Shown here one piece after another: positions 2,533 to 54,135 of a DNA stretch of 64,000 bases; the first letter of the stretch is position 1, and every line of letters starts with the position of its first letter. The DNA is taken from the NCBI GenBank assembly GCA_043228905.1, contig JBHGNT010000003.1, positions 23,250,001 through 23,314,000 of the forward strand, in the 5' to 3' direction. A program made the position numbers and the translations under genes. The stretch comes from Azolla caroliniana. Lineage: Eukaryota > Plantae > Polypodiophyta. The notes beneath the pieces were generated by a model. That model made no database searches, was not told the DNA's origin, and saw only the letters and a list, made by a program, of their open reading frames with translations.

Positions 2533-2987
2533 TATTAGAGATCTAGGTACTAAAGTAAGCTTAAGATAAGGATAAACAAATGATAGATAGAAAGGAGAAA
2601 GAGAAAGAAGGGTGCCGATCCACCCGACCACCCCCGAGCGAAGGGATCGAGACGGACTCGAGCCTCGATCATCGTCCCATACCACCGCCGTGGCGTCGAG
2701 TCGTACCTGGTGCTGGCGCGCTCGCTACAAGAGTTGACCCACCACAAGAGCAGAGTCTCGATGTAGTCAAAAGATGATCCAATGAGGGTAGCTAGGCCTC
2801 TTATTTATAGCAATACCCAAGGCCCCCAGGCAAGTTCACACTTGACCTAATGGGTTGTCTCAATCCCGAGGATTAAAAGTAATCCTCCACTTCTTTACAC
2901 TCTCGTTTAACCCTCACACTTATCCACATGTATAGAATACTACGGTAAATTCTCACCACGGGATATGAAATGGTCATGCTCGTAACA
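2533..2987 (-). repeat. 3' LTR of chromovirus (455 bp)
   Basis: Matches 7675-8263; adjacent to the PPT; reads TGTTAC...CTAATA on the minus strand. Confidence 0.9.
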
Positions 2988-5900: not shown

Positions 5901-6024
5901 GAGCGGTGAAACTAAGGTATTGGGTTATTTGTGCCAAATACATCTCAATGGACATTTGTCCAGGAGGATTCCCTTGAGTTCCTTCCGCTTGAGCGGATGA
6001 CATCAGGTCGTTAATTTGAGCCAT
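2974..6024 (-). pseudogene. Chromovirus polyprotein remnants: protease, partial RT, RNase H, integrase, chromodomain
   Basis: FLFDSGSSHNFV (protease); [13 protein letters not shown] and PLPRVDD (RT N-term); [11 protein letters not shown] (RNase H); CHQCQ and SISMDFI, HPQFDGQTERVNQ (integrase); PERILD...KIKW...ATWE (chromodomain). Several frameshifts and stops. Confidence 0.92.
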
Positions 6025-7164
6025 TAAAGATTATTTCTAGAAAAGAAATAGGATAAGGTTAGAGAGATAGTCATAACATCATGTCGTGATGTAAACATAT
6101 CATGGGCAAACATTAATCGATATCATGATCTCACGTCAATACCCCTCTAGACGTATGAGATGAGGTTCAAGATCAGGTTACTATGGTAACACAAAGGTGT
6201 TTAAAAAACCATCGGGGTGACAATTTAATGTCTTTCCCTGATCTCTATATCGATTTTTTTATGGCGGCTCCCCGAGGCTCAACCATGTATGTTCACGTCA
6301 TGAGTAGTTTATACACGAAAAAAATGTTAACAATAAACTATGTTTCGGTGCCCACATATGTGGTTTCGGCTCTTTAAGTCCTATTACGAGGACCCCGAGG
6401 TGCACTTAGACCTTAAGTCTAAACATGTGTTATAGTCATATGTATCACCGATTTTGTATGGTCTTGGTCATATTTGAACTCGAGACCTCGAGAACAAATG
6501 CATTAAACACTTGAGCCAACCAAGTAGGTTGCTCTTCTCGAATGCTTAATGTTTGATGCGTATAAGAGATATGCGAGGCATTTGATCATATATGTTTTTT
6601 TTTAAAGAACATATATGTCAAGGTTCCTTATTTCGCCCTCATTTACCAAATTATGTTGGTACGTTACCTAACCTCAAGTCTCGTAATTACGATGGCATAG
6701 GCCAAATTGCAACCTAATGGTCAAGCCAAATGAGCCCTCGTTTCGTAGTAGGCCCACGTGGCCCATCACATGGTCACGTCATTACGAATGCCTCTCGTAA
6801 GAACGAGCTCATGGTCGCGTCATTGGAGCGACCTCAGTTGAAGTGGGTCAAGCCCTACGTACTCAACATCATTATGGCTATAGGTGTTTCTTTACGTAAC
6901 GAAATCGAGGTCATCAACGGGGTTGTCAACAATAAAAAATTGTTGAAAAAGGGATGGTGACAACACCTTTCTCACAAAAATGTGAGAACGGCCACCAACA
7001 TCCTTTTCCCGACAAGGACAACTTTCGATATAATCACGTAATAACGAATATACACATATGTTTACTTATCACATATATACGATCAAATACGTATATAAGT
7101 GACCACATATGCCTATATTAAACATATCGTTATATTAAATAGCCACAAATGGTGTGATCGAGAT

Positions 7165-7420
7165 ACGTAATCGAGGTATATACCTCTACGCACACGAAAC
7201 ATCCACTAATAAGAGATCATCGTAATACGCAATTGAGGTATTGACCTCTTACGCATACGAGACCAAACGCATATCGTTTACAACAAATCAAGGTATTAAA
7301 CTCATATGCAAACATAACATATGTTCGTGAATGTAATACGTAATTGAGGTATTAACCTCGTACGCATACGACACTCATCACATATTATTAATATGTCAAA
7401 CGAGGTATTGACCTCGTGCA
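7165..7420. repeat. Five regularly spaced palindromic motifs (GAGGT-N4-ACCTC) in the chromovirus 5' leader
   Basis: Stems start at 7173, 7235, 7290 (degenerate), 7346 and 7402; spacing 55-62 bp; intervening sequence variable. Confidence 0.8.
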
Positions 7421-7662
7421 CATATGTAAACATTTTAGAAAATCAGTTAAAGACCACTACAACATCATTGACTTAATGAAAAAATGACATATAAACTAAA
7501 CACATGATTAGATGGGAGAAGAGAGAATAGAAAAAAAAAAAATTATGGAAAGAGTTACCGAAGTTCTTTGTTGATCGTTGTCTGCATCAAGGTCGACCGC
7601 ACATCGATCGATCACCATCAATCAAAAGACAAATGAAAAACAAAGAAACATTAGTACATAAA

Positions 7663-7672
7663 TCTGATACCA
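7663..7672 (-). promoter_or_regulatory. Primer-binding site (tRNA-iMet type)
   Basis: Minus strand reads TGGTATCAGA, 2 nt inside the 5' LTR. Confidence 0.85.
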
Positions 7673-7674
7673 AA

Positions 7675-8263
7675 TATTAGAGATCTAGATACTAAAGTAA
7701 GCTTAAGATAAGGATAAACAAACGATAGATAGAAAGGAGAAAGAGAAAGAAGGGTGCCGATCACACTCTCGTTTAACCCTCACACTTATCCACATGTATA
7801 GAATACTACGGTAAATTCTCACCACGGGATATTAAATGGTCATGCCCATAACATATGGATAGCTAGGCCTCTTATTTATAGCGATACCCAAGGCCCCCAG
7901 GCAAGTTCACACTTGACCTAATGGGTTGTCTCAATCCCGAGGATTAAAAGTAATCCTCCCCTTCTTTACACTCTCGTTTAACCCTCACACTTATCCACAT
8001 GTATAGAATACTACGGTAAATTCTCACCACGGGATATTAAATGGTCATGCCCATAACATATGGATAGCTAGGCCTCTTATTTATAGCGATACCCAAGGCC
8101 CCCAGGCAAGTTCACACTTGACCTAATGGGTTGTCTCAATCCCGAGGATTAAAAGTAATCCTCCCCTTCTTTACACTCTCGTTTAACCCTCACACTTATC
8201 CACATGTATAGAATACTACGGTAAATTCTCACCACGGGATATTAAATGGTCATGCCCGTAACA
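7675..8263 (-). repeat. Rearranged 5' LTR with a 205-bp unit repeated ~2.4 times
   Basis: ACACTCTCGTTTAACCC recurs at 7763, 7968 and 8173; the segment equivalent to ~2621-2785 of the 3' LTR is missing. Confidence 0.88.
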
Positions 8264-8310
8264 CCCGCGGTCCCGCCTTATTTCATACGTTAGAGCGTAA
8301 CAACACGACA

Positions 8311-8500
8311 CCGGATGACGCAAGCCCGGTGAGAACCTCTCACATGATGAAGGGACATATATGTAAATATGTCTCTGTTAGCCCATAGTGGCTATATTTG
8401 TAAATAGCCTGAAAGTCATATTAGTATAAATATGACCTAGGTCAAACAGAATATGTTGTTGCATTCTTGGTGGAACTACTGTACAGAGCGTAACAGAGAG
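8311..8500 (+). mobile_element. Fragment of the Copia-family LTR seen at 27474
   Basis: ATGACG(G)CAAGCCCGGT, GGCTATATTTGTAAATAGCC and AAGTCATAT..GTATAAATATGAC match 27517-27900. Confidence 0.75.
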
Positions 8501-8504
8501 AGAT

Positions 8505-11500
8505 ATTCCGCATATTCCTATCATCATCTTGTTGATTGTTCATGAAACAACGAAGATATTGCTCCAAAATCTGGTTGGTACGCTCAGTTTGGCCATTAGT
8601 CTTAGGATGATACCCCGAAGAAAGCTAATCCGAAATGTGGAGAAGTTTGAACACGTGCTTCCAAAACTTTGAGATGAATTGTGGACCATGATCACTAATA
8701 ATATCATCCGACAAACCATGATGCCTAAATACCTCCCACATAACGAGATTGACCATCTCTTGACTAGTAATAGACTTCGTACATGCCAAGAAGTGTGCCA
8801 TTTTGGTAAGTCGATTCACCACAGTGAGAATTGCATCAAAACCTTTTGAAAATGGGAGATCAGTAATGAAATCCAAGGATATAGACTTCCAAGAATTTTC
8901 CGGAATGGGAAGTGGTTGTAGTAAGCCATAGGATCAGTGTCGATGACTCTTTGATCGACAACATATATCACAGTTGCGAACATACTCCTCAACAAAATGA
9001 CGAAGGCGGGGCCACCAATAGTGTCAAGAAATTAATTCTAGAGTTTTGTGAACTTCAAAATGACCAGCCATTTGTGAGTCATGGCAATGTTGTAAAACTT
9101 GTAGTCATGGGGGACCATCAGGAACATACAATAGGTTTTTCCGAAATAGAAAACCACCATGCCAATAGAACTGACGATAGTCATTACAAGAGTTTTTCGA
9201 CTATGAGCAAGAAGCACGATCCGGGAAGATATGATCCAAAACATCCTTGGTGAATTCATCAATGGCCATATGATCTCGAATGGAATCAAGAAGAGTGGAA
9301 TCTTCAAGCGTTGTATGGCATTAACTACCATTAATCGTAGGCGATTAGGACCCAAAAGGATTTGTTTTGATGCTCGAATGCAGGTTCCCCTAGACGAAGT
9401 TCCATATAAGAGCGCCGAGAAAGAGCATCTACTTTGCCTTGCTGCATCCCAAGGCGATATATGATGACAAAGTCGAAGTGAGTCAAAAATTGTGCCCACC
9501 GGGCTTGTCGTCGACTCAAGACTCGAGCATTTTGAAAATATGTCAAGTTCTTATCATCGTTGTAAACAATGATTTGCTGAGAAGAACCTTCTAGAAAATG
9601 TCGCCATTGTTGAAAAGAATCCACAATTGCAAGGAGTTCTTTGTCATGGATCTCGTGGTTGATCTCTGCAGCTTAAAACTTTCGGGAATGAAAGCTGACA
9701 AGATGTAGCTATCCATCATCTCCAGTCTGCGATAGGACACTCCCTAGTGCAAAATCGGACGCATCAGCTTCAAGGATGAAGCGTTTTGTTGGGTCGACAT
9801 GTGCTAAGATAGGTGTCGTTGTAAACACTCGTTTTAAGCTTTCGAATGCTTCGACTGCATTTGAACTCCATATAAATGGCTGATTTTTGTGTGTGAGTTC
9901 AGTGAGCGGAAACACAACCTTGGAATAATCTTTAATAAATTTTCGATAGAAAAACATTGCACATTGTGCACTAAAAGGGGCGTTTGTGAGTTCAGTGAGC
10001 AAAAACATGACCTTGGAATAATCTTTAATAAATTTTCGATAGAAAATTGCAAACCCGAGAAAACATTGCACATCGCGCACTAAAAGGGGCGTTTGCCACT
10101 CTAAAATTGCTTGTAACTTCATGGGGTCCATAGCGATACCATCTGATGATACAACATACCCCAAAAATTCCACTTGATTCTGGCCGAAACTACACTTCTC
10201 TAATTTTGCATAGAGACCATATTCTCGGAGTCGATGCAGTACCTGATGAGCATGTTCATCATGCTCCTCTTGGGTCTTCAACTAGATTAGAATATCATCC
10301 AAATAAACTATAGTGACGATATTGAGAAAATCTCAAAAAATATCATTCGCCATATGTTGGAAAACTGTAGGTGCATTCGTGAGACCGAATGGCATCACAG
10401 TATACTCAAAATGTCCATAGCAAGTGCGAAAAGTTGCCTTTCATTCATCCCTTGGGCGAATCCGAACTAGATTATATGCACCGCGAAGGTCTAACTTTGT
10501 GAAATATTTTGCTCCACTGAGACGTTCCAAAAGACTCGGGATTAACAGTAGAGCATATCTATTCCGGATAGTCACTTTGTTTAGCCCTCGATAATCCACG
10601 ACCAATCGAAGAGTCCCATTCTTTTTCTTAACGAAGAAGATAGGTGCACCCGCAGGGGATCTAGAATGCCGAATGAATCCGTTTGCCAAATTCTCATCAA
10701 TATATTCCCGCAAAGTCTCTAGCTCTACAGGGGAGAGATTATAAATTGGGCCCCATGGAAGTTCTTTCCCTGGTTGTAAGTCAATAGGGCAGTCGTATGG
10801 CCGATGCTCAGGCAATGTATTGCCCTTCAGCTTATCAATGACATCTGAGAACTCTTTGTATTTCTCTGGTAGTTTAATGTCCACTTCATGTAAAGTGGAT
10901 GATGGAGTTGCTACTATTGTGAAGACGAACATGGCCTTGTTCCCCCCTTCCTCACGCAACTGTCGTAGAGAGATGGTTGATAACTCAGGGGATCTAGTAT
11001 CACATATCGGAGAGAGGGATGTTGGGTTTGTGCTTTTTTCCCGAGTCTCCTCAATTGTTCTTTTCATCCAATCAATCTTCAGGTTATGGAGTTCAAACCA
11101 AGGGAGACCTACCACTATTGGGTGTTCCGGACTGTGAATAATGTTGAAAGAGATTATGCTTGCCAAATCACCAAGAACTATCCGAATTGCCTCAGACTCC
11201 TCGACTATATCTCCTGATGCTATGGGACGGCCACCAATGACTCCTACGGCTACTGGGCTTGGGAGCTTATTCAAGAGGATGTTTTGTGACAAGGCATATT
11301 CACGATCCATGAAACAAGAGTTGGCTGTAGAATCTAGGAGGGCAGAGGCTAGGACTCGATGACATGTGGACGTGGTAAGCTCGACATGTGTGCAGAAAAA
11401 ACTCAACTCACTTGATTTAATGAAATGGAACCACGACTAGGAACTAACTCTACATAGCTAGGATGGTCCAACGAAATGGCTCCTATTTTGGCCGGACTTA

Positions 11501-28277: not shown

Positions 28278-29840
28278 ATGGAAGGCGGCGGTAGTGGGCC
28301 TCCTGGCATGATGGTGTTGAACTCACAGAACTACGCCGACTGGAAGATAAAGATGGAAGACCTTCTCATCGTCCGAGACCTATACGAACCGATCGACAAT
28401 GCCGAGATACCCAAGGGGGTAATAGAGTCGGAGTGGAAGCTCCTGAACCGGAAAGCCGTAGCGACGATCCGGCAATATGTCGATGTAAGTGTCCTGCAAC
28501 ATGTGGCGAACGATACGAACGCCTATGAGATGTGGAAGAAGCTGTCGGGCCTCTATGAGAGGAAGAATGCGTTGAACCGGACCTCCCTGATGAGGAAGAT
28601 AGTGAACCTCAAGTACCGGGACGGCGAGAGTATGGTGGAACACGTAAGCACGTTCATGGGATTCGTGAACCAGCTTGCGGCGATCAAGTTCCCGTTGGAG
28701 GATGCAATGCAAGCCATCATCCTGATGTGTACATTGCCGGACAGCTGGGAGAACTTGGTGGTGACTCTCAGCACCTCCTGCACCGAAGATAACTTGTCCC
28801 TACAAACGGTAAAGACAAGTATTTTGAACGAAGAAGCGCGTCGGAGAGATAAAGAACCGGTTTCTGATCAGAAGATGCTGCTTACCGAATCGGATCGGGG
28901 AAGACAATGGAACCGGAGTCCGCAAAGACGGGAGAAGTCGGGGACCCGGTCGCAGTCAAGAGGAAGGCCAACATGCTTCCACTGTGGGAAGCCGGGGCAC
29001 TTCCGGAAGAATTGTCGGCACTACCGAAAGGACAACGGAGCCGACGACACCGATTCGAAGAAGTCACCGGAGAGAAACGGTGCATACCGGGGAGCCACGG
29101 ACCGGAGAGGTCCGGATCGGCGAGGGCAGGACCGGAAAGGAACGACGGCACTTGCGGCAAGTGAAGAAGAGATAATGCTTATTACCGAAGAGAAGGAGCT
29201 GAACCTTGCCGGTGTAGAGATGACCTGGGTGGTCGATTCCGGAGCGTCGTTCCACCTGACCCCGGAGAAGAAATACTTCTCATCCTACACAGCCGGTGAG
29301 CACGGCTGTGTCCGGATGGGAAATGAAGGCACATGCCGGATTGCCGGCATAGGAGACGTGTGGCTGTTGACATCAACCGGATGCAAGATGCTGTTGAAGG
29401 ATGTGCGACACGTTCCGGAGGTCCGATTGAACCTGATCTCGGCCGGGAGGCTAGATGATGAAGGCTACACGGGTAGCATCCGGAACGGTGTCATGAAGTT
29501 CAGCAAGGGGAGCCTGATAGTGGCTCGGGCCCGGAAGGTCAACACCCTGTACCTGATGAATTCCCGGCTATGTCCGAGGAGCTGAACGTGGCAGCCGACA
29601 CTGCCGGTGAGCTGTGGCACAAGAGACTGTGCCACATGAGTGAGAAGGGATGAAGAGGCTTGCAGAAGACAACCTCATTCCAGTGAAGCATGTGCATCTG
29701 GAGAAGTGCACCGATTGCCTGGCCGGTAAGCAGAACCGAACCTCCTTCCACTCAAGGCCACCGACGAGACGTAGCGCACCATTGGAGTTGGTGCACACTG
29801 ATGTGTGTCAGGTAGAAACGAAGTCACATGGCGGAGCCAG
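28278..29840 (+). CDS. Copia gag-pol polyprotein (gag, zinc knuckle, protease, start of integrase), two 1-nt frameshifts, truncated
   Basis: LNSQNYADWKIKMEDLL, TLPDSWE, CFHCGKPGHFRKNC, WVVDSGASFH, VRHVPEVRLNLIS, LWHKRLCH, CTDCLAGKQ, PLELVHTDVC. Confidence 0.88.
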
Positions 29841-30711: not shown

Positions 30712-31398
30712 AGTACTGAATATGGGAAACATCAAACTCATCATTGTGTGAGTATGGCTAGCTTGGAAAATAACGACGAATATCATATAGATAATGGGCA
30801 CAAAACAATTGATATCCAGAATGTGAATACTGAAGTTATTGGAAACGATGATTGGATGGGTCTTGGAATCTCGTCTAAATATAGTAATAGAAAAGATTGT
30901 TGCCAATCATGAAGAAATCCTAAGGATACATGATAAGTTGGATGAAGTACGCAATGCGCTTAAATGTACGAGGGACGATGTTGCCTCTTTGTCAGAGGCT
31001 CTAAAAGAGAGACTAGAGAGAGCCCTTCCATATGTTAATGATTTGGTTTGGATATTGACTACAGCTGCTAAGCTCGGCATTAACTCTGTGATTCCCATTG
31101 TAGATGTTTTCGATACCAAATCATTCGCTCACCCAATTGAAAATTGCCAAAAGAGCACACTATTCTGACAACATCATCAAGCATCACCTCTCATGTCCAA
31201 CCAACAATATTGCAATCTTCTGAACAATGGCAAAAATGATTGGGATCGATATTGAGGGACAAGTACGAGGGTGCCACAAACAAAATCATATACGATAAGT
31301 TCCTTCTCAGGCGTGCCACCTACAAGGAAACAGACGGTAATATTCGAGTCGCATGGCTATGTGACAAAGACTATGAGGACGCACACCATTCCCGCTAG
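30712..31398 (+). pseudogene. C-terminal fragment of a third TRN1-like Roco paralog
   Basis: EKIVANHEEILRIHDKLDE, ALPYVN...LTTAAKLGIN, then in another frame SSEQWQK*LGSIL...KFLLRRATY...VAWLCDKDY, matching the C-termini of the two intact genes. Internal deletion, frameshift and stop. Confidence 0.88.
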
Positions 31399-31654
31399 AT
31401 TGAATTTTGTCCTGCCCACAGAGATTTCAGAAAAAAAGTGTCTAATATTTGCTCAAATGTTTTAATTGCTAATTTCTATGTAATTCTTGACTAAACACAC
31501 ATGCATGCATGCTTATGTATGTATATAAACAATAATAAAGAGATCACTATTTTTGTACTTTAAATGGCGGAAGGTTTTTCTTCCTAATTTACTGATGCCT
31601 CTTGTTAAGCCTTTGTTGTCTATCATGCATTCTTTGGTGTCATGTATTGAGCAA

Positions 31655-31778
31655 TGTGTCATGCACATATTTTGTTTATTTTAGGATCTATATATGTTAT
31701 ATTCATAGAATTAGTGTGTCATGCGCATATTTTGTTTATTTTAGGATCTGTATATGTTATATTCATAGAATTTGTGTG
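31655..31778. repeat. 60-bp tandem duplication
   Basis: TGTGTCATGC.CATATTTTGTTTATTTTAGGATCT.TATATGTTATATTCATAGAATT x2. Confidence 0.9.
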
Positions 31779-32609
31779 ATGTACAATGAAGGTGGGGTTT
31801 TGCATTAGGTCATTGGTTTTTATATCATCTCCTTAATGTTTTTGTTAAGCTTGTGCTAATTCTATAGAAATTAGCATAAGTTAGAAACTTAAAATAAGCT
31901 TAGCTGAATTCTTCCATAACATCATACCAAATGCATGAGATAAAGACACACATTAACCACGTAGACCAAAGGTTTTTTAAAATATGATATCTTTATTTAG
32001 TATTCAAATCAATCAAATAATAGTATGGTGTACTTGGAAGAAAATCAAATAATAATTTTCTTCTAAGCTCACTATTGTTTTAATATATATTTTCAAGTGG
32101 TTGATCATCACATTGTTGCGATGACGCATGTGCATGTGTTACTCAAGCGGGACCCTTGGGAACCTGAACTAAGGAGGCTATGATGTTGTCGGAGAGGACT
32201 TTTAAACCCCTTCGTGGGTTGTCTCCAGTAATTTTTCCCTCTTTTGTTTTGTGTAATAGCATTGTAACGATCAAAGATTTAATTCAACTTGGGGTAAGAC
32301 TCAAACCGAAGATAGCTTAGGCTTGAGTCAAGGAAAGTTGTTTGTTATTATATTATTGTTTTCGTATGTTTATACATATTTTTTTGGTTGTCTCCTCTTT
32401 CCCTTTTTCTCAATATTCTACCTTTATACCCGCCACATCACAACAATGCTAACAAGCAGATCATCCTTGACACCAAGATATCATCATCCTATTGGTCAAG
32501 AAATTACCACACACACCTTTACATTCAGCAATAATGATTGGATTCTAGTCCAAGTAATTAGATATTAACAAGAATATATGTTTACTTGCATAAGATATTT
32601 CAAAGCACC

Positions 32610-32712
32610 ACAATATTCTCCTCACATTGTACGTTGATGATCTCGTGTTGACAAGCAACACTAACGTCTATATAGATATGATCAAGTAGAGGCTAATGTT
32701 CTTGTTCAAGAT
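32610..32712 (+). pseudogene. Tiny Copia RT remnant
   Basis: Translates as ILLTLYVDDLVLTSN...MIK*RL. Confidence 0.55.
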
Positions 32713-33735: not shown

Positions 33736-36700
33736 TTAGCCAAGTAGCGGGAAAGGGATCTGTCTTTCGTAGTGCTCGTGGCACAGCCATGTGACTCGAT
33801 TGCTACCGTCCGATGTGTACATGGCACGCCGAAGGAGGAACTTCTTGGCTATGTTGTCGTCGGTCATGCCCCCATGTTGTGCCAACACGGACACCAAGCA
33901 CTCTTGCCAGTGTCCGAAAGACCGCAACCATGGACACACACGAGACGTGGCGGACAACTCTTCTTTCCCGATGCCGGCATTGAGGCCGGGAAGCCAGCCA
34001 AGCATGGTCGAGGTCGTTGGAGGAGCTAGAATGTTGATGCCTACTGTAGCTGCTATGGTGAAAGTGCGAAGGAGACGATTCGCATACAGAATGGCTCTGT
34101 GTAGAGCCTCTGAGAAAGAGGTGAGTGTGATCCCCAATTGCTCTTCTATTAGGTGCGGCGATCCCCTGTCCTCGCAGCAGAGCTTGATTTGCACAGACAG
34201 CAAATGATGGTCTCCCATCAGTGAAGTCACTACCTTCATTGTGTCGCTCGCCCCTTTGGTCGTGAGGAAGACCAAACGAGGGAGCTGCTTGTCAGATCCA
34301 TTCTCCATAGCACAATTCAATAGCTTGTCTGCAGCTTCCATAACCTTGCTCACGACATCGCTTCGCATACAATCGATTTCTTTATGCAGTTCATCGATCC
34401 TCTTCTTCATTTCACCCACCTTATCATGTAACCTTATGATCTCTTGATGACTGGCAATAACTTTTTCTTTGATTGAATTTAGAGTGGATTCTATGTCCAT
34501 GAACACCGACCTTGACATCCCCACGCGAAACGGTACCTCCTGATCTCCCTTTTCAGATATTTGATCTTCTTGCAGACTAGTTGGGTTATTTTGAAAGCCA
34601 CTTCTTGTCCTATCTTGGTGCAGAGTTTCATGTTGCTGGAATACATGGGCCTCATCATTTTCCATTAATTCGTCAGCCACCTCTTTCAACCACGATTTAA
34701 AAGACATGAGAACCTCTAAGTAATTCTTGTAGCCGAGGAGATCAATCCAAGAAGTTGTTGTACAAACATTCATATACTTAGAAGAGTTTTTCCAATTATG
34801 ACATGGTGGGCGGCCTTCCTCAAGTTGATTTCGTAGTTGTTGCTTCAAATGAGTTATTTCCATGCATTGATCTTCTCTGTTTTGTGCCATTGAAGGGTCA
34901 TGTAAGGAGTCAGGTTGAATGACACTTTCAATCAACTTGACTCCTTGGATGCCTTTGGGTTGGTCGTAGACCTTGATAACAGTTTCAATGATATGATCTT
35001 CTACATAATCTATCATCCTTGCCATGTCTTCTTGATTGTTGGTCTCAGCTCGAACCAACACATCTATCACATTGTCTGCTTTTGCTTGAGAAAACACCAC
35101 TATGATCTCCATGGTTGGCATTGGTACACAAATGGATATGAAATCTTTGCCAAGCTTTATATCAGCATTGACCACTTGGAATGCTTCGTTCAATAACACT
35201 TGAATCCTTAGGAACAAACTTGGTGTGAGAAAGTTGAGATCTCTGTTTTCACAGGCAAGCCTTCGGCCAATAAATGAAGAAGTATTATCATGTGAACTGC
35301 CGGAGGAGGTTGTCCATTGGAGTTGTTCCATTCCTAGATCTAACTCTTTGGGATCTGACAATATGTGTGGGACAAAGAGGCAATCTCCATTCCTTGTTGC
35401 GTTGTCAAGGTTATTGGGAACCTTAAAACACAAATTCATTGCCTCCATCAAATCCACCAATATAGACCCTTTTACTTGAGATTTAGTAAGGGATTCCAGC
35501 TCTGCCTCCAAGAAACCTCGACTTGTATAAAATCTGTGGTTTGCCTTGGTCCTAGATGCTCTACGCTCTGGGAAATGAATTAGCCTTCTCATGATCTGAG
35601 TACAGAACCAATTGGGATCAAGAACAATGTGTGCTGTAATGTTGTCATATAGGATAATCCCAGACTCAATCAAAGATGAAGCGATCGCTTTCAATTTAGC
35701 TTCATCATCTGGAACGGAAAGTTGAACCCTGCAGATTTCGCTAAATTGTGACCATGTAATGATTCGTTGGTTGGATGTCTTCAAATGATTCGACAAATGG
35801 CTCCTTACTTGTGTGCAGATTTTGTACACCTCAATACCTTCAAGCATTTGCTTTGCAATGCCAAAGACATATTCTGCTAGAGTTTTGACAGACTCCTTTC
35901 TTGCAGCATCCACTGAGAAACTTGGGTCAACTATGTGAATGATCTCTTTAAACTCGGATCGAAGCGAATTAATCGTCAAGGAGAGATCACTTGAGCAGAG
36001 ATCCATTCGATCTGCACACATGAATACCACGATCACTTTCGGAGCAATGCTAAGTTGGCGGCTTTTGGAGGCAAGAAACTTGAGCCAATACCTGAATCCT
36101 ATTTCAAATTCCTCCTCCTGTTTTTTCTGCGTTCCATCTCTTCTATCTTTCCTGTGTGTAATGGAACTCCACACAAACATGAGCATAGGTGGAGCTTGAT
36201 GGGAGCTATATTGCCCTAAGTTTGGGAACATAAAATCTTGGAATGCATGGAATTCTGGTCGACCTGCCATTTCCCACACAGACAATCCAAGTCCTTCTTT
36301 CTCGATGGCTTGGAATTGGATTCCTTGTGTGCGATCCCCTGCGATTCTTCCAACTTTGGGAAGCCTAAATGTTCTCACTGTATGTTTCTTGCCTGCATAG
36401 ATGGAATGCATGGTGGATAGAAGGCTAGTCTTATTCGCTCCTGCACGAACAAACTACATATTATGCGCTTAAACACAGAGAAACGCAAAACAGTATTAGG
36501 TAAAAGTCAGTAGTTTGCCTGCATCTGGATGATCTCTGCAGATGAACAGCCGCATGGATGTGGCCGAAACTTTCTCAAGATCACCTCCCAACATGAATAG
36601 GCGTTGATTCCTCGCGATCTGAGCTTCAATGGTGGGATCCATGTTCTCTAAGCCCTTCAGCTCCAGGAATGGAATGCCTGAGCGAGAAAGTGCATCCATA

Positions 36701-37707
36701 ACCGCAGCCACAATAGCTCGATTGGAGTCAAGATCAGTGGCATTACAGAACAGGCGGCCTAACGTGAACCTGTATAATCGAGCAGGAGACTGCGCGAGTT
36801 CTTCCATGCAATCCAACAGATACTCGTTTTTCATGACACAGCCGTCTACTAAAGTAAGCTCTTTGAGCTGGGGCCAGTGGTGCAGGAAGCCACGGAAGCT
36901 CCTCCGCTTGGGGCCATGGCTCATGAGGATTCCGTGGAGATCCAGCCTCTGGAGAGAGGCTGCAAGGGATGAATGTGAGGGATGCAGGTCTGCCAATTTC
37001 TCGACGAACTCTGGCGATACAACATCACCCAGGAGGTGAAGGCTAGTGAGGGAGCAGAGCTCGCTTAGCTTGGTTATGCATTCATCTCCATGCATCCTGC
37101 AGACCTGCAGGGAGAGATCCTGCAGGCCATGGCATGACTTGAGGACAGTCAGCAGATCAGAGACATTCAAGGCATTGCACTCTCTGATGATCAAACTGCT
37201 CGGGGCAGCATCACGATCTGCAGCTTGAGACAGAGCCTCCAGCCAATCCGAGGCTTCGCGTGGAGACAGATTATTTAGGTACAGGAGATGAACCGCTCCT
37301 CCGCCGAAATTGGCGGCATCCCGGAGGTACTCCATCCTCCGGTCGGCCGCCAATTCTGGCGGCATCACGGGGTCTCCAAGATCAATCATGATGTCTTTGG
37401 TGCCCCACTCGAGCAGGCCGACACTCGACAGGTAATTGATGGTGCCGGCGACTCGGCTGCTATCGATGAGGAAAAGCTTCCTAACATCGGTTACACGAAT
37501 CAGATGAGAGAGGCCCCGATGATCGCGATCGTGTTCGGCCCCGGCCCCGCGGATGAACCCGAGCACCTCGAAACGATCGAGGGATGCCCTCGATTTCGCG
37601 AGGGCATCTCGGATAAATTCGGAATCCCAGATCCTCTTCACGTAGGCATGGGGTGGTGGGAGCTTCTCATGGTGATGGACCATGGTGGGAGCAGCCTCCT
37701 TATCCAT
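33736..37707 (-). CDS. TRN1-like: TORNADO1-like LRR-Roc-COR protein, copy 1 (degenerate GTPase motifs); exons 37707-36519 and 36440-33736, ~1297 aa
   Basis: LxxLxL repeats (LQDLSL, LTSLHL, LQRLDL, LKELTL); Roc WEMAGRPEFHAFQDFMFP and RYWLKFLAS; COR IVLDPNWFC and GRRLAC; TRN1-type tail LCCE..H and FLLRRA..WLCHEH. A 78-nt GC-AG intron joins the two ORFs in frame. Confidence 0.85.
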
Positions 37708-40922: not shown

Positions 40923-43900
40923 TTAGCCTAGGGAGTAAGGCATTTGTTCTTTGTAGTGCATGTCACATAGCCACGCAACGTAATCACTCCCATCTCCTTT
41001 TTTGCAAATGGCGCGCTGGAGTCGGAACTTCTCGAGTATGTTTTGGTCGGTCAAGCCTCCGTTGTCCGTCAATATGGACGCCAAGCACTTCTGCCACTCT
41101 CGGAAAGACTCCTCGGACATGTTAGGACACACATGAGAGATGATGCTTGGTGTACCCATGGACGCATCATTTTCTGGTCTAACAGTCTTAGATATCATGG
41201 GGTACTCCTTGACCCCTGGGATGTTGGGAAGCCAATTGGGCAGGACAGCTAAACAGTTAACGCTGAGCTTGGCAGCTAAAGACAGGATAAAGACAATGTG
41301 ATTAATGTATGGGAGGGCTTTGTGTAGAGCCTTGGACAGGGGTTTGGAGAGGGAGGTGAGAGTGATCCCGGCTTGTTTCTCCACCGGGTGTGGCGACCCC
41401 TCGTACTCGCAATAGAGCTCGAGCCGAATAGCTGAGGCATGGTCGCCGAACAGCGAGGTCACCAACTTCCTTATCGTATTCACACCTTCGGTCGTAAGGA
41501 CGACGAGACGAGGGAGTTGCTTATCGGCCTCGTTGTCCACCGCAAACTTGAGCAGCTTGTCCATGGATTTCACAACCTTCCTCATGACATCTTCCCTCAT
41601 ACATTTCACCTCTTCATGTAGATCATCCAACTTGGTGCCAATGGCATCCACTTTATCATGTAGCCTCAAGACCACTCCATGAGTCACATCCACTTTATCA
41701 TCTATCCTCAAGGCCACTCCATGACTCACATCCACCTTATCATGTAGCCTATAGACCTCCCTCAAGATCTCCCTTACCATTCCCCTGCCACATTGTAATT
41801 CCACTCCCTCTTCTTGTATTTCTTCCTTGTCCAGATCAATGTTGTCAAGCATTTTCTTCTTCGGATCTTGATTACTACTAGTCACATCTTGATGACCTCG
41901 ATTCTGAACGTATTCGTCATTTTGCAATAGTGCATCCGTCTTTTCACTCACCTCTTTCAACCATGATTTACAAGAGCTGATGACTTGTGAGTAATTAGTG
42001 GGACCGATAAGGTTAATGAAAGAAGTTGTCCTAAGCATAGCCATAGACTTAGTTTCCTTCCAAACATAACATGGTGGGTGTCCTTGCTCAAGTTGCTGCC
42101 TTAGTGTTTGCTTTAAATAGTTCATCTCCACACATTGATCTCTATTTCGTGTCATCGATGGGTCATGCAAAGAGTCGGGCCGGATCACACTCTCAACCAA
42201 CTTAACCCCTTGGATACCAGCTGGTTGTGCACAAACCGTAACCAAAGTGTAGATGATAAGCTCTTCCACGTAAGATACGGCCCGTGCCATGTCTTCTTGA
42301 CTATTGTTTGGAGCCCGGACCAACACATCTATCACATGATCTGATTTTGTTCGACAAAAAGCCACAATGATCTCCATCATTTCCACACAAATGGATATGG
42401 AATCTTTGCGGAGAATCACGTCAGCATTGACATGATCTTGCTGGAATACAATGTTGAATAACACTTGGATTCTTGGAAACAGACCTGGTGTAAGAAAGTT
42501 GAGGTCTTTATTCTCGCACTCTAACCTTCTACCCATATATACATAAGTATTATCGTCCGAATTTTGTGGGGTTGAGGTGGAGGATCTCCACTGGAGTTGT
42601 TCCACACCCACATATAATTTTCTGGGATCCGTCAGTGTAGCTGGGATAAAGAGATGATCTGCATCACTTGTTGAGACACCAAGATCATTGGGGACTTTGC
42701 AACATAGGTGCATTGCTTCCATCAAATCCACCAATAGAGACCCCTTCACTTCAGATTTGGTAAGCAGCTCCAACTTGGCTTGTAGGAAGGCACGAGTGGT
42801 GAATCCATGAATCTCGATCGTCTCGCATGCTTTAGACTCCGTGAAATGGATCAAGCTTCCCATGATTTGATTGCAAAACCAATTGGGATCAAGAACAATG
42901 TATCCAATGTTGTTTACATATATGATGATTCCGGAATCGTTCAAAGACAAGGCGATTGCTTTTAATTTAGCATCATCATTGGGAATAGGAAGATGCTTGC
43001 AGATTTCAGTGAACTCGGACCATGTAATGATTCGTCGCTTGGATGCCTTTAAATACTTTGACAGATGCTCGCTCACCTCTTTGCAGATGCCATACACTTG
43101 GACACCTAACAGCATCTCTTTTGAAGTCTTGAAGATCATTTCTGAGACAGCTTTGACAGACTCCTTCTTTCTGGCATCCACTTCAAAAGGAGGGTAGGCT
43201 ATGTCAATGATGCCTTTAAACATAGATCGAAGCGAATTAATTGAAGCTGATACAGCACTTCCAACAATATTCATTTGATCGAGCCGCGTTAATACCACGA
43301 CGACTTTGATAGCAACGTTAGATTGGGGGCTTTTGGAAGCGAGAAACTTGAGCCAGTACCTGAAGCTTGATTCGAATTCCTCGATTTCTTTCTTTTTACC
43401 CTTTCTGCTGTTCTGGCTGTGCATGGGACTCCAAACAAACATGAACATAGATGGAGCTTGATAAGAGCTTGTTCCGATGTCGGGGAACATGCAGTCATGG
43501 AATGCATGGAATTCTTGATGGCCCGCCATGTCCCACAGAGACAATCGGATTCCGTCTTTCCTGATGGCTCGGACTTCGATTCCTCGTGTGCGATCCGGCG
43601 AGGTATGTCCGCAGGCAATGAGGGTTCGCATCTTAGCTCTCTTGCCTGCGTAAATGGAATGCATGGTGGATAGAAGGGTAGTCTTTCCTGCAAGAATAGA
43701 CAAGTTACAATACAAGATTGATTTAGCTTGATAAGCAGGCATGCATCCATCCATGGATTTACTGTGTCAGAGGTAAATTAGGGAAAGGAGGTGAAAGGAA
43801 AAGCAAAATAAAGGTTTCATGGGAAGGGAGTGATTAATTTGCCTGCCTGCAAATGGATCCCCGCATATGAAAAGGCGCATGGAAGTAGCCGGCACTTTCT

Positions 43901-45017
43901 GAAGGTCTCCCAAGATGAACAGGCGTTGGTTCCTTTTGAGCTGGGCTTCAATGGCAGGATCAATGGTACCTAAGCCTCGTAGCTGCAGGAATGGGAGCCC
44001 AGACAGAGAAAGCGCATCCACGATGGCACGGGTAGTTCGTGGGGACTCCAGGCCTGTCGTATAGCGTAAGGTTCCTAAGGTGAGGCTCTCTAATGGAGCA
44101 GGAGATGAAGAAAGTGGGGTTTTGCTTGTCGTCTGCTTCTTCTTGGACTGTTGTTCTAGGTCTTCCATGCAGCAGATTAGGTCATCTTCTTTGAAGTTGT
44201 AGAAGTCTATGAGAGTAAGATCTTTGAGGTGGGGCCAATGGTGCAGGAAACCGGCGAGGCTCGTGCTGAGGGATGGAGATTCGCCATGGGGGATTATCTC
44301 CATGTGCAGGCTCTGCAGAGAGGCTGCGAGGGGAGAATGCGAGGGATGAAGATCTGACAGTTTCCTCAGGAACTGGCTGGAGACCACCACATCCTGAAGG
44401 TGGAGGCTAGTGAGGGATCTGAGGCAGCTCAAGAGCTGAATGCATTCATCGCTGACATTTCTGAAGTACTGCAGGGAGAGATGCTGCAGGCCCTTGCTTC
44501 TCTGGAGGGCACTGAGGAGGCCATGGACATGGAAGCTGCAATGAGTGATGAGCAAGCTCATGGGGGCCGCGGAGCCGCGCTCCGCCGCCACAGACAGTGC
44601 CTCCAGCCATGCCTGACTGTCGGCTTCCGAGAGATTCAGGAGATAGACTGCTCCCCCGATGAAATTCGCAGCATCCCAGAGGTGCTCCGCCCTTCTTCTT
44701 CGGCTCGATTCATCCTTTTCTTGGGCACCCAGATCGATCATGAGGTCTCGGCTCCCCCACTCGCGCCGCCCCCCGTCATTATTATTGCCCGACCAATAAC
44801 ATATGGACTCGATCCCTCTGCTGCTGTCGATGAGGAAGACATTCTTCGTATCGGTGGCTTTGATCGCATCAGAGAGCTCATGCCCGCCATGGCTAGATCC
44901 TTTCAAGGTGGTTCTGGATCTCTCGCATGCTTCCTTGACATAATTTGAGTCCCATTCCATGAGGATGTAGGGGTGAGGCGCTTGAAGCGGCTTCCGCTGC
45001 CTCGCAACCTCGTCCAT
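40923..45017 (-). CDS. TRN1-like: TORNADO1-like LRR-Roc-COR protein, copy 2 (intact GTPase motifs); exons 45017-43847 and 43687-40923, ~1311 aa
   Basis: LRR units (LQHLSL, LTSLHL, LKDLTL, LESLTL); spliced P-loop LFICGDPFAG|KTT, RTRGIEV, WDMAGHQEFHAFHDCMFP, LTRLD; COR VLDPNWFC, FIPATL, MGRRLEC, FLTPGLFPRIQV; tail LYCE..H and WLCDMH. 159-nt GC-AG intron. Confidence 0.9.
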
Positions 45018-48864: not shown

Positions 48865-51240
48865 TCACCCTAAAAGAAGCATCCCAGTTGCTTCCACACT
48901 CCCATCTTCACTATCATACCTCTCTTCCCATGCTTTCTTTTCCACTCCCATGGCTTTGATCTTGTCAGCATCCTCTCGCCTCCCAGCGGCCGTGTATATG
49001 TTTCGCATAAGAACATAAGCAGCCGCATCATTTTCATCCAATTGTATAGAATGATCAAAGGCTAGTTTCCCGAGTTTCACATTCGTCCATTTGTGACAAG
49101 CTCCTAACACAGTTAGCCACGTTGTATGATTCTCTGAATATGGCATTTCATCAACCAGTGTCTGAACCTTCTCAAAATGACCAGCACGTCCGAAAAGGTC
49201 AATCACACATGTATGATGCTCTACCGTTGGCATTATTCCAAAACATGTACTCATACTAGCAAAATACATTTGACCCTTTTCTAGTAAGCCAGAATGGCTA
49301 CAAGTTGTAAGCAAGATTGTACATGTGATTAGATCGGGTACTATTCCTTGTCTTATCATTTCATTGAATGTGGCAAACGCCAATTCATCTTTCCCAACTT
49401 GGGCATATCCAGCAATAAGAGAATTCCATGAGACAAGTGCTCGGAAGGGTAACTCATCAAACACAACTTGAGCTTTTGCTATTGCACCACATTTTGCGTA
49501 CATGTCAATTAAAGCATTTCTGATCAAACTGTGTCTTTCTAACCATCCATCTTTAATAATATCATTATGTATACTTTCTCCCTTCTCAATGGCTCCTAAC
49601 ATGCCACATGCTTTCAAGATGCAAAGAAATGTAACAGCATCCGGGCCAAAACCATTAGATTTCATATCCTCAAGACAAGTTAGGGCTTCCTCTCCATTTC
49701 CATGTTGTGTATACCCAGCAATGAGAGCATTCCAAGACACCACATCTCGGATTTGAATCTCATTGAAGACTTCTTGTGCTTTTCTAAGTGCTCCACATTT
49801 TGCATACATATCTACCAATGCATTTCCAATCAAAATATCCTTTTTTAGCCATCCTGTCTTAACGATCTCGGCATGTAATTTTTGGCCCTTTTCAGTTGCT
49901 CCTATGCTCCCACAAGCCTTTAGAATGCATGAAAATATAAATCCATCTGCCAGAAAACCATGATCTTGCATTCTTCGATAATAGTTTAATGCTTCCTCAC
50001 CATACCCATACTCAGAATACCCAGCAATAAGTGATGTCCAAGATATTATATCCCGAGTAGGAATCTCATTAAAAACTTCCTCAGCCTTTCTTATATCTCC
50101 ACATTTCACATACATGTCAATTAAGGCATTACCAACCCAGGTTTCCTTCTTCAATAAACCCTCTTTTAAGATTTTGTCATGAATAAATTGGCCTGTCTTG
50201 AGACAACAAATGGTGCCACAAGCTTTCAAAATGCAAACAAAAGTGACAGAATCAGGAGAAAAACCTTCACATATCATCCATTCTAAATAGCTCAATGCTT
50301 TCACACCCTTCCCATATTGCGTGTATCCTGAAATGAGAGCATTCCATGAGACTATATCCCGAGCAGGAAGCTCATCAAAAAGATCTTGTGCTTCCTCAAG
50401 CAAACCACATTTTGCATACATATCCAAAAGTGCATTCCCAATAAGAAAATGCTTCTTCAAATCTTCAACTTTTATAATCACTGAATGTATTTGCTGGCCC
50501 TTCTTAGCTTCCCCTATGCTTCCACAAGCTTTCAAGATACATATTAGAGTGATTGAATTCGGATGAAGCCCTTCCTGTTGCATTCGTGTGAAACATTCAA
50601 TACCTTTTTGGCCATGTCCATATTGAGTATATCCACCAATAAGAGAAGTCCAAGAGACTACATCTCGAACCCTAAGCTCATCAAACACATCTACCGCCCT
50701 TTCCAGAGCACCACATTTTGAATACATATCAACCAATGCATTGCTGACAAAAATATCTTTTCCTGAAAAGCCACGCTCAACTATATCTGAATGTATTTCA
50801 CTTCCTTTTTTAGCCGATCTTATGCTCCCATATACTTTCAAGATGCAAACGAATGTGTACCCGTCGGGGGGTGGACCATGGCAACACATCTTCTCATATA
50901 GTTTTAGTGCTTCTTTGTTATAGCCATATTGGGCATATCCACCAATAAGTGTTGTCCAACATCTGACATCTCTAACCCTAAGAATATCGAATACTTCCTG
51001 TGCTTTCGTAAGTTCACCACATTTAGCATACATATGCATCAAAGTGCTTCCGATACATGCTTCTTTCTCTAGTAACCCTCTCTTAACAATCTCTTCATGT
51101 AATTTCTCACCATTGTATAGATCTTTCCTCTTAGCACAACCTCTCAATGAGGACATAAGTAAAGAAACGTCCTCTACATTCTTCTTGTGCTTTTCCTTTG
51201 AACCAATAAGATTTGCATTAGCCATAGCTTCACAAACCAT
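48865..51240 (-). CDS. PLS-class pentatricopeptide repeat protein with E domain, no DYW
   Basis: Six GNAL(V/I)DMYAKCG-type motifs alternating with VVSWNALIAGY and VTFVCILKACG; terminal HHTCVIDLFGRAG, WLTVLGAC, AAAYVLMRNIY. First in-frame ATG is 51240; the true start is uncertain. Confidence 0.92.
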   Translation of the reverse strand: MVCEAMANANLIGSKEKHKKNVEDVSLLMSSLRGCAKRKDLYNGEKLHEEIVKRGLLEKEACIGSTLMHMYAKCGELTKAQEVFDILRVRDVRCWTTLIGGYAQYGYNKEALKLYEKMCCHGPPPDGYTFVCILKVYGSIRSAKKGSEIHSDIVERGFSGKDIFVSNALVDMYSKCGALERAVDVFDELRVRDVVSWTSLIGGYTQYGHGQKGIECFTRMQQEGLHPNSITLICILKACGSIGEAKKGQQIHSVIIKVEDLKKHFLIGNALLDMYAKCGLLEEAQDLFDELPARDIVSWNALISGYTQYGKGVKALSYLEWMICEGFSPDSVTFVCILKACGTICCLKTGQFIHDKILKEGLLKKETWVGNALIDMYVKCGDIRKAEEVFNEIPTRDIISWTSLIAGYSEYGYGEEALNYYRRMQDHGFLADGFIFSCILKACGSIGATEKGQKLHAEIVKTGWLKKDILIGNALVDMYAKCGALRKAQEVFNEIQIRDVVSWNALIAGYTQHGNGEEALTCLEDMKSNGFGPDAVTFLCILKACGMLGAIEKGESIHNDIIKDGWLERHSLIRNALIDMYAKCGAIAKAQVVFDELPFRALVSWNSLIAGYAQVGKDELAFATFNEMIRQGIVPDLITCTILLTTCSHSGLLEKGQMYFASMSTCFGIMPTVEHHTCVIDLFGRAGHFEKVQTLVDEMPYSENHTTWLTVLGACHKWTNVKLGKLAFDHSIQLDENDAAAYVLMRNIYTAAGRREDADKIKAMGVEKKAWEERYDSEDGSVEATGMLLLG

Positions 51241-54135
51241 TGCATTTAAACCCAACAAGGGTTCGCACAAACCATATCATGTTAGTTCTTGCTCCGTAAA
51301 CCCAACAAAAACCCTGTGCATTTCTTTCTTTTTGCTTCACAATGCTTATTAAGGAATGAAAGTACGGTGAAATGCTCTGATCGTCCTTCCAATTGCAAAC
51401 AAATCCCAAAATGTTCTGAGAAGGGAGATACATACAAGAACTTGGTTCTTCGTTGATTGTGTGTGGAGGAAACACCCACATCTTCTGAGAGTGTCCTGTT
51501 CCACCAAAGGCAAATGTCATATCTGAGTGCAGAGATTTGCGACTCTCCATGTCTCATGTCTACGAACTCTTTCACTACTAGATTGTATTATACTACTAAT
51601 TCTGACTGTATTTGAATTTGAAGTACCCCCTCGGTTTATCTCTGTCTTCCTGAAGGTCCAACCCACACTAATTTTGGGCTATTTCCCGTGATGCCCCTCT
51701 CGCGGTGAAGGCTTGAAATCCAAGAGGTACGATTGCTCAATAGACAATGGCTTCATTAGGGGCATCTTTTGAAATTTGATATAGTGGAGACTTCGGGGCA
51801 TCAGGTTAGTGAAGAAAATTTGAGGGATATTGTAGAATAGTTCTTGACACTTCCCGAAAATACAAACTATGCCATTTGTACTTTAGGAAGTGTTGAGAAC
51901 CACTCTTGGTTTGGTCAACAAGTTAATCTCTTCTTGTCTAGGATGAATGATTTTATGTTTTGAAAGTAGTATTTGTGTATGGAATCACCATGACTCGGTC
52001 CCAACATTATTTCTTAGTGTGTATGATTTGCTTGCTTCTGATGTTCCCAATATGAATCAAGAAATAATAGTTGTGGAAATATGAAGCAATTGTTGTAAAT
52101 CTAATATACTCTTGTTATCGTGAGGATGTATTGGTGAGTGGTTTTTAGAATATTTTATTTGTCGTTGTCGTATGAGCACGCAATTGCTTCAAAAAATCAT
52201 TGGCTTTATTTGTCAAGCTATTTTTCGATAGAATATTCTCCCCTTGTTGGGACAGATTTGGATCATTAAAATATCATAGACCTAACCAATCTAGTTGTAA
52301 TTAATAATCTTAAGTTAACACCTTGTTCCTCTACTCTATTAGTAAAGTTAGAATTTGTCTATATTTGCGTGTGTTCAAACTTCAAATAGTGTATGATTCA
52401 TTTGCCATTTGTATGGAATAAAGTTTGAGTTAAGAATCAACCTTGAAAGTTAAAAGATACATTTTCACTCACCCTAAACAATATGCATAGGTGAGTGAGA
52501 GTTGAATGTGTGCAACTTCCATTTGAAGTACATTGCTAGATAATTCATGGTTGTTGAGGCCTAAATAGAAGAACTATGTGACATTGTGTCCACAATTAAT
52601 TTTAGCATGACCAATGAGATTAAGAGAGGATTGAAGCATGGTAGACCGGGGAAATGTTCAAAGGAAATAAGTGTAATTATATTATCAGAAGTTGAAATCA
52701 TTTCTCGCATAGATGATCATCACAAACAAATTAATGTGTCCTCATACATGAGTACATGGTCTACTCTATATAAATAATCATCCTTGGTATCCCAAATTAG
52801 GCATATGGTCCCGATTTTGACGATTATCAAACTTAATGAGCCACCCAAATTCTTGCAAGCACTTGAGAATAGGTTGTCAACAAGCCATACAAAGCATTAA
52901 TCCTTGAAGTGGCACATGAGAATAGGTTGTCATATGTTTGCCGACACGGCCAAAAAGGATGGAAAAGATAACAATTGAATATGTCCAAATTTATTACTTT
53001 ATGGGGTGTGATAAATGGCCACAAGGTAGCCCATTTCTAGTTGGTTATCAAGATTGGAAAACTATTCGTCTTTGGCATTGGGTAATGGAGCAATGCCTGC
53101 AATCATCCAACCTCTAAGGTATGAATCATATTGGCCCCTTGTGGAAACTCAACTCACCCTTTGTGAAGTGTTATATGTGTGGGTGATGAAGGAGACATTG
53201 TACCTCTATCAATTACATTACTTGAATATTCTTTCTCAACTACTTTTTTGGCTCTTTAATGAGCGCAAATCAAGTATTTTTATGTATCATATGAGATGAC
53301 CAATAGTATGAAATCCCAAAGTTGTCTCATTGTAATATTCTACTAATTTAATATATATTTTAGTTATCATCAATCTTATTACAATAAGCCTTTTATACAT
53401 AGGTTCTAGTTACAAAAGCTTGTCACACAACAAACAAAAAGAGGCCAACTTGAAAAAGGTATAGAAAGGAAGAGTTAAAGACTATTATTACTTCTTTATT
53501 GATCACTAGAGCAAAAGAGAGATTAAGTTTTTTGGAAAAAAAAAGAGAGAGATTAAGGAGTGATAATATGAATTGATAAGCTAACTACATGATTAGCAAA
53601 AAGTTGTTTCCATCTTCTATTCCTTCTTGGTCTTTGACTCAATTACCAGTAAACTAATTTACCCCTTCACGACTGATCTTGTGATGGTGGAAAAAAGCAT
53701 GTGGTCCAATTGGAGGTTATCTCTTTCAACATCAATTCATATTCTAACAATGTTTCTCCTAGTTATTCTATCTTGTTATCTATAGACTATGAGTTCTATA
53801 ATCATAAATATAACATATTGTTCCTAGGGTTAATATCCTCTTGTAATTTGTTAATTTGTTTTTGATCGACAAATTCTATAGACTCCCTTCAAAGCACATG
53901 AAATTGGGTCAACAACAAGTATCTTATTTTGAAAACTTGTGTCCATCCCTCTAGAGTTGTAATTTCATTTTCATGATGTCCTTGCGACTTCTTGATTGTT
54001 GAGACACCCACTCCTAGTTTAAAACCCATATTGTTTTGTTAAATGCACATATAGAAAGCGATGGGTTGCCTTTCCCTATCTGACACACACACACACATGT
54101 ATCCCACAAAAATGTGATGAAGTTGTGGTACAGAT

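Follow-up and report, generated by a model that had tools for sequence, protein, structure and literature searches.

A spliced and selectively maintained Roco gene with disrupted GTPase motifs, a predicted pseudo-GTPase, in the fern Azolla caroliniana

We analysed a 64,000-nucleotide stretch of the Azolla caroliniana genome (contig JBHGNT010000003.1, positions 23,250,001 to 23,314,000; hereafter the window) in which two neighbouring genes encode proteins of the Roco family. One of them, copy 1, carries a GTPase (Roc) domain with disrupted nucleotide-binding motifs, while the motifs of the other, copy 2, are canonical. The two genes lie head-to-tail on the minus strand with a spacer of 3.1 kb, each consists of two long open reading frames (ORFs) and a short intron, and their proteins are 47-51% identical. 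Copy 1 has the domain order LRR-like N-terminus, Roc, COR-A, COR-B and C-terminal domain, and its open frame of 1,297 codons (37707-36519 and 36440-33739) contains no stop or frameshift, in agreement with the roughly 1,300 open codons counted in an earlier note on this DNA. Every motif quoted in that note for the two copies was likewise found in the sequence. The features of the two genes are as follows.

33739-37707, minus strand: copy 1 coding region, a TORNADO1-like LRR-Roc-COR gene (ORFs; Pfam COR-A; AlphaFold2 (AF2) and Foldseek; ESM-Atlas).
36519-37707 and 33739-36440, minus strand: exon 1 (ATG at 37705-37707) and exon 2 of copy 1, with the stop codon at 33736-33738.
36441-36518, minus strand: intron of copy 1, 78 nt, GC-AG, phase 1, within the Gly codon that precedes the P-loop Lys.
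36424-36543, minus strand: G1 (P-loop) of copy 1, ICRDHPDA+G at 36519-36543 and (G)ANKTS at 36424-36440, its codons split by the intron.
36262-36276, minus strand: G3 (switch II) of copy 1, WEMAG then R, where the family has WDMAG then Q.
36010-36024, minus strand: G4 of copy 1, FMCAD, where the family has T[RHC]xD.
40926-45017, minus strand: copy 2 coding region, exon 1 at 43847-45017 and exon 2 at 40926-43687 (ORFs; Pfam COR-A).
43847-43868 and 43677-43685, minus strand: G1 of copy 2, ICGDPFAG and KTT, the exon 2 part starting from 43687.
43521-43535 and 43278-43292, minus strand: WDMAG then H, and LTRLD, of copy 2.
43688-43846, minus strand: intron of copy 2, 159 nt, GC-AG, with the same position and phase as the copy 1 intron.

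Both copies match the Pfam COR-A model (E=2.4e-10 for copy 1 and 1.3e-10 for copy 2). When an AF2 model of copy 1 (exon 2 residues 1-600) was compared with the PDB by Foldseek, the best 32 matches were all Roco proteins (E down to 1.5e-11), namely LRRK1, LRRK2, C. tepidum Roco (CtRoco) and M. barkeri Roco2 (MbRoco2), and the CtRoco COR domain alone (3dpt) gave a template modelling (TM) score of 0.54-0.56. Pfam and Foldseek thus place a COR domain directly C-terminal of a Ras-like Roc in copy 1. Searches and folding were run exon by exon, and the model is poor in Roc (predicted local distance difference test, pLDDT, 65). On exon 2 alone, which is without strand beta-1 and half of the P-loop, the Pfam Roc model PF08477 reaches 20.1 bits for copy 2 (cut-off 27) and has no match in copy 1; it is present in the full-length relatives P0003 and P0015. 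No Pfam LRR match was found on exon 1 of either copy, an exon that is homologous to the N-terminal parts of P0003 and P0015 and in which leucine-rich periodic segments are visible by eye. The nearest ESM-Atlas cluster to copy 1 bears the name 'LRR-GTPase of the ROCO family' (Streptophyta), and the assignment as TRN1-like rests on this name and on 26-29% identity to the canonical plant-type member P0014.

The conserved stretches of the family can be identified as G1, G3 and G4 because the full-length cDNA-type relative P0003, in a phmmer search against the PDB, aligns its ICGDPYAGKTT, WDMAGQ and LTRMD with GNTGSGKT, DFAGR and THLD of the LRRK2 Roc-COR; the identification also draws on alignment to MbRoco2. 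In our comparison set of 14 other family members, in each of which the G1 region or its exon 1 half was seen, ICGD[PA][FY][AS]G followed by KT[TS] occurs in 14 of 14, whereas copy 1 has ICRDHPDAG|ANKTS. Copy 1 therefore departs from the canonical G1, GxxxxGK[ST], and reads RDHPDAGANKTS; copy 2 has GDPFAGKTT if donor 43846 is used. At the nucleotide level, the copy 1 P-loop shows GGG to AGA (Gly to Arg), a CAT codon inserted in exon 1, TTT to GAT, and a 6-nt insertion, GCGAAT, between the Gly and Lys codons and directly behind the conserved acceptor. Both insertions are in frame (3 nt and 6 nt), and the loop is three residues longer than in the family. A shifted 3' splice site was considered as the source of the extra 'AN' and rejected, as an in-frame 6-nt insertion fits better and 9 of 10 acceptor-proximal bases match copy 2.

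The earlier note counted three altered nucleotide-binding motifs in copy 1, which holds for G1 and for G3. The latter has ExxG (WEMAG), an Asp-to-Glu change with the Gly kept, and an Arg after the motif where the family has Gln; the same WEMAGR is found in the relative P0002. At G4 (MCAD) only a Thr is replaced by Met and the guanine-specifying Asp is kept, a change that appears minor beside TCAD in the family member P0001 and THLD in LRRK2.

The altered loop is carried by a spliced message. Logan contigs of four runs were aligned to copy 1, X2 being from organism B and X9 from organism C (different studies) and X1 from the organism of the window. In spliced contigs of both X2 and X9, 78 nt are missing between 36439 and 36518 (six letters are ambiguous), and only one of the seven possible joint placements, 36441-36518 (junction 36519/36440), has GC..AG ends; the exon joint presupposed by the earlier note is thus present in contigs from relatives. 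These contigs are ungapped across both P-loop insertion sites and therefore carry both insertions and the same long loop, and X2 differs from copy 1 at only 1 of the last 173 nt of exon 1. The copy 1 long-loop message is made and spliced in two related organisms. The introns of copies 1 and 2 share their place in the Gly codon and begin with GC, relatives having GT there, and the DNA contig L002 shares both the intron and its GC donor with copy 1. One further X2 contig (depth 30, also joining 33852 to 34865; region 34476-34508) has a TCG-to-TAG change at 34508, in frame on copy 1, and probably represents either a paralogous gene or, in organism B, a defective allele.

Copy 1 also bears the marks of purifying selection. 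Over the C-terminal 236 codons, X2 and the window differ by 16 synonymous and 18 nonsynonymous changes, which corresponds to a ratio of nonsynonymous (dN) to synonymous (dS) divergence, omega, of about 0.33 (p=0.0017 against neutrality), and the differences of the same relatives fall on codon positions 1/2/3 as 5/9/23 (p=0.0007). An X9 contig of 2,473 nt has 135 substitutions and no gaps, the internal indels of X6 contigs are all multiples of three, and omega between copies 1 and 2 is 0.35-0.43 at a dS of about 0.9. At 50% divergence from its paralogue, 3.9 kb without constraint would be full of stops. The young pseudogene that the earlier note had set against its own reading is therefore not what we see: with its open frame, an omega of about 0.3 against the relatives' transcripts and only in-frame indels, copy 1 is maintained. 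No close orthologue above 59% identity was found in the protein collection with exon 1, exon 2 and the first 180 residues of exon 2 as queries, and the relatives' transcripts are therefore absent from the collection searched.

Constraint is unevenly distributed along the protein. At sites that at least 80% of the family have in common, copy 1 departs in 20% of cases, compared with 10.6% for copy 2 (Roc, 25% versus 10%; COR-A, 19% versus 7.5%), and the maximum-likelihood tree path is 0.60 substitutions per site for copy 1 and 0.34 for copy 2. A rough three-taxon split, made with two different outgroups, gives Roc a dN of 0.22 in copy 1 versus 0.10-0.12 in copy 2, whereas dN in COR-A and COR-B is about equal between the copies (branch omega 0.2-0.4); the C-terminal domain has some excess dN in copy 1, and its branch omega is noisy and high (0.7-1.0). 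These figures indicate that relaxation in copy 1 may be strongest in Roc, with COR-A and COR-B under the same degree of constraint as in copy 2. Such a pattern, with the COR scaffold conserved and the G domain loosened, is expected of a pseudo-GTPase.

The same data bear on whether copy 1 is a recently inactivated gene heading to decay, its open frame a leftover and its transcripts noise. Such a fate would suit a family with birth-and-death turnover and a relic in this very window, as well as the donor of copy 1 (CAG|GCAAAC, the weaker GC donor), the X2 contig with the in-frame TAG, which may nevertheless come from a paralogue, and the high C-terminal branch omega. We regard it as very improbable, because the long-loop form is common to three organisms at 5-7% divergence, 1,297 codons have stayed open, omega against the relatives is low with all indels multiples of three, the COR domains on the copy 1 branch remain constrained, and splicing is correct in two organisms.

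We favour instead, as reasonably probable, the reading that copy 1 is a spliced, selectively maintained LRR-Roc-COR protein, most likely without normal GTP binding or cycling, and hence a pseudo-GTPase. It combines a GTPase fold and disrupted G motifs with purifying selection, and the long-loop spliced transcript, the omega of about 0.3 and the concentration of substitutions in Roc all support the pseudo-GTPase character that the earlier note had suggested. The term is used here as a well-supported prediction of biochemistry from sequence. To our knowledge, P-loop NTPases hardly ever depart from the Walker A spacing GxxxxGK[ST], and because copy 1 has two additional residues between Gly and Lys and one upstream, its loop is unlikely to hold phosphates in the normal way. 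The Roc domain would thus be without a canonical phosphate-binding loop, its first Gly being Arg and three extra residues lying between strand beta-1 and the Lys, and a Glu at the Mg-site Asp of DxxG would further make it unlikely that phosphates are held normally.

CtRoco forms a closed homodimer when nucleotide-free, and GTP binding opens and monomerises it, with the P-loop and switch II as the trigger (PMC11052575). By analogy, a copy 1 Roc unable to load GTP would be held closed and dimer-competent, and the protein might act as a constitutive scaffold or regulator and not as a switch, the LRR-like N-terminus, COR-A, COR-B and C-terminal domain being kept as the scaffold. What the data show are the motif lesions, the junction in relatives, the purifying selection and the domain-specific relaxation; the loss of GTP binding, the locked conformation and any partner are inferred. 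Copy 1 is thus probably a 'dead-switch' member of the Roco family.

Several points weigh against this interpretation. In the loop copy 1 retains the Lys-Thr/Ser, and elsewhere the Thr of switch I (DRTQG), the Gly of G3, the Asp of G4 and a G5-like Asp-Ala, which leaves some room for non-canonical nucleotide binding. The lesions may be young, as they are common to relatives at 5-7% nucleotide divergence but P0002 has a copy-1-type Roc half together with an intact GKTT. The omega against relatives was obtained from a partial difference list in the C-terminal region, with Roc outside it, and the constraint therefore concerns the gene and not Roc; the branch estimates are limited by dS near saturation and possible gene conversion and are indicative only; and the AF2 model covers the exon 2 part only, so that the complete Roc domain lies outside it. 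Additionally, the case for transcription in the species itself is weak: the X1 contigs, from putative RNA, are 100% identical to copy 1 and cover only the 3' 1.3 kb, which is consistent with 3'-biased RNA but proves little.

The retained residues could also mean that copy 1 still works as a nucleotide-binding switch, through a P-loop that is longer and unusual, and is not a pseudo-GTPase. The Roc half common to copy 1 and P0002 has an omega of about 0.39 (11 nonsynonymous to 7 synonymous), which is not free drift, and an Arg after DxxG is the state of LRRK2 too. A working switch nonetheless seems unlikely, although less so than decay, given that the Walker A spacing is broken on both sides of the Gly, that Arg stands in for the first Gly and Glu for the Mg-site Asp, that dN in Roc is doubled relative to copy 2, and that in the 215-nt P-loop/intron stretch compared with L002 all 3 of the 3 differences are nonsynonymous, 2 of them in the loop.

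The relatives used in these comparisons are mosaic. L002 (1082-1445) reads ICRDHQDAG|AYKTS and has an intron identical to that of copy 1, and its first exon is 65% alike in nucleotides and 39% in protein. In L001 (107-2470), which corresponds to P0002, an intron like that of copy 2 and GKTT are followed by a Roc half resembling that of copy 1 (dS 0.1), beyond which the sequence diverges. Both are metagenome contigs with a coverage of 1-2x. As candidate deep orthologues of copy 1, P0002/L001 and P0020/L002 were rejected, since their likeness to copy 1 is confined to 125 codons or about 215 nt. The mosaics may be due either to frequent gene conversion in the family or to chimeric assembly.

Copy 2, which the earlier note took for an intact GTPase, has canonical G1, G3 and G4 motifs, but its G1 is in frame only with donor 43846 and a His follows DxxG. 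A 4-nt GCAG duplication at the border of exon 1 and intron (43842-43850) creates tandem GC donors, 43846 (in frame) and 43842 (frameshifting), and the latter is the homologue of the CAG|GCAAA donor of copy 1. The His (WDMAGH, 43518-43520) stands where the family has Gln, as does P0031, which is near-identical over this stretch, and may alter the hydrolysis of copy 2 itself. P0031 is also among the low-coverage mosaic metagenome contigs. The remaining Roco feature of the window is a decayed third gene.

30863-31380, plus strand: third Roco gene relic, reduced to a C-terminal part (about residues 650-913) and placed tail-to-tail with copy 1 (tblastn).

The DNA at 31016-32614, which overlaps and flanks the relic, is 68-77% similar to the sequence that follows the truncated Roco ORF in L001, and the truncation may be an old event common to the window and L001.

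A comparable arrangement was found elsewhere. In contig L005 of a relative (1535-9580; also L003 and L007) two Roco genes stand in tandem. The frame of gene A continues from its exon 2, with no stop, into the first exon of gene B, and the resulting ORF has 1,343 aa. The P-loop of gene A is intact, its switch I is degenerate and duplicated in tandem, WEIPG replaces WDMAG, and both of its introns begin with the canonical GT; gene B is canonical. Gene A is an independent second instance of a degenerate Roc in the family, and it adjoins a canonical copy. Of the linked active and dead pairs that the earlier note had envisaged at other loci, this degenerate-Roc copy upstream of a canonical one is a hint only, and the arrangement is no more than suggestive of cooperation because tandem arrays are the norm for the Roco family.

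The earlier note had gone on to propose an active/inactive heterodimer, a sensor-helper pair or a dominant-negative regulator. As a dedicated pair, copies 1 and 2 would dimerise through COR-B, work as sensor and helper in the manner of paired NLRs, or have copy 1 act as a dominant-negative regulator of copy 2. The copies are adjacent on the same strand, COR-B is equally conserved in both, and Roco proteins dimerise through COR-B/Roc (PMC11052575); in L005, L003 and L007, moreover, the degenerate-Roc copy lies directly upstream of the canonical copy and in frame with it, in a Rosetta-stone-like manner. We consider a dedicated pair doubtful all the same, because the two genes are head-to-tail across their spacer and not head-to-head around a common promoter region, separated long ago as paralogues (dS about 0.9, 50% identity) that fall in different clades of the family tree, and sit in a cluster that also contains a decayed relic, and because neither Pfam nor alignment revealed an integrated extra domain in copy 1. 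A prediction of the COR-B with COR-B complex (copy 2 residues about 366-595, copy 1 375-600) gave no answer (score 0.00, partner fold uncertain) and is no evidence either way. Copies 1 and 2 are tandem paralogues of long standing whose cluster, which includes the relic of a third gene, shows birth-and-death turnover, and their functional pairing, in any of the three forms proposed, is unsupported. A wider version, in which the expanded fern Roco family repeatedly yields dead-Roc members working with canonical neighbours, so that a logic like that of NLR pairs evolved independently, appears slightly more doubtful still.

Compared with known systems, copy 1 is built like TORNADO1 (TRN1) and the plant LRR-GTPase ROCO proteins, in which an LRR-like part at the N-terminus is followed by Roc, COR-A/COR-B and a long C-terminal part. 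In flowering plants TRN1 is described as a single gene with a developmental role, whereas the fern clade is divergent and multi-copy, and copy 1 differs from this type in being without the canonical P-loop that is present in P0014 and all other members seen. With LRRK2, LRRK1, CtRoco and MbRoco2 the copy family has in common the Roc-COR fold and the aligned G1, G3 and G4; unlike these, the fern genes have no kinase domain, and the copy 1 P-loop is three residues longer than in the solved Roco proteins, with the first Gly lost and ExxG for DxxG.

Class I pseudoGTPases do not bind nucleotide. PseudoGTPases such as p190RhoGAP pG1/pG2 and the AAGAB N-terminal domain are GTPase folds with disrupted G motifs within a larger scaffold (PMC5593906, PMC12490416). 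Copy 1 likewise keeps its fold under selection with disrupted G motifs in a scaffold protein, but p190RhoGAP and AAGAB are biochemically proven whereas copy 1 is a prediction from sequence. Paired plant NLRs are typically head-to-head. They resemble the present case in that a member with a dispensable-looking nucleotide loop adjoins a canonical one in a fast-turnover tandem family, and differ from it in that Roco is not NB-ARC, the fern genes are head-to-tail and no decoy domain was seen to be integrated into copy 1. In brown algae, ROCO repertoires are expanded and have been proposed as immune receptors (PMC11378527); the likeness lies in LRR-Roc-COR genes that expanded in tandem within a single lineage and include many pseudogenes, and the difference in that the lineage here is a fern and the case is an intact gene with a degenerate Roc and not LRR exon shuffling.

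Beyond the Roco cluster, the window holds a pentatricopeptide repeat (PPR) gene at 48865-51270 on the minus strand, 4 kb upstream of copy 2, which is intronless, has 801 codons and an E motif and belongs to the PLS class. PLS-class PPR proteins with an E motif are of the plant organelle RNA-editing type. Retrotransposon remnants lie at 28278-29585 (plus strand), 2974-5641 (minus) and 10441-11406 (minus), and comprise copia-type gag/Pol beta-barrel, Ty3-type RNase H/chromodomain and a reverse-transcriptase fragment. The window is plant DNA, with an E-motif PPR gene and copia/gypsy remnants.

A 2014 review held that ROCO genes are confined to flowering plants and that ferns are without them (PMC4104024). 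In our literature search we found no paper on fern TRN1-like or Roco expansions and none joining the terms 'pseudoGTPase' and 'Roco'. Pseudo-enzymes are common in expanded families, and Roco GTPases (LRRK2, DAPK1, TRN1) are usually treated as GTP-driven switches. The genes reported here add to the evidence for a large, fast-turnover TRN1-like family in ferns, not described in the literature searched. If degenerate and canonical copies cooperate, which is unproven, paired-receptor logic would have arisen in plants a second time, independently. If the pseudo-GTPase reading is true, copy 1 would be a natural mutant in the nucleotide-free state, its P-loop lost yet the gene selected, and would reveal functions of the LRR-Roc-COR scaffold that are independent of GTP cycling.

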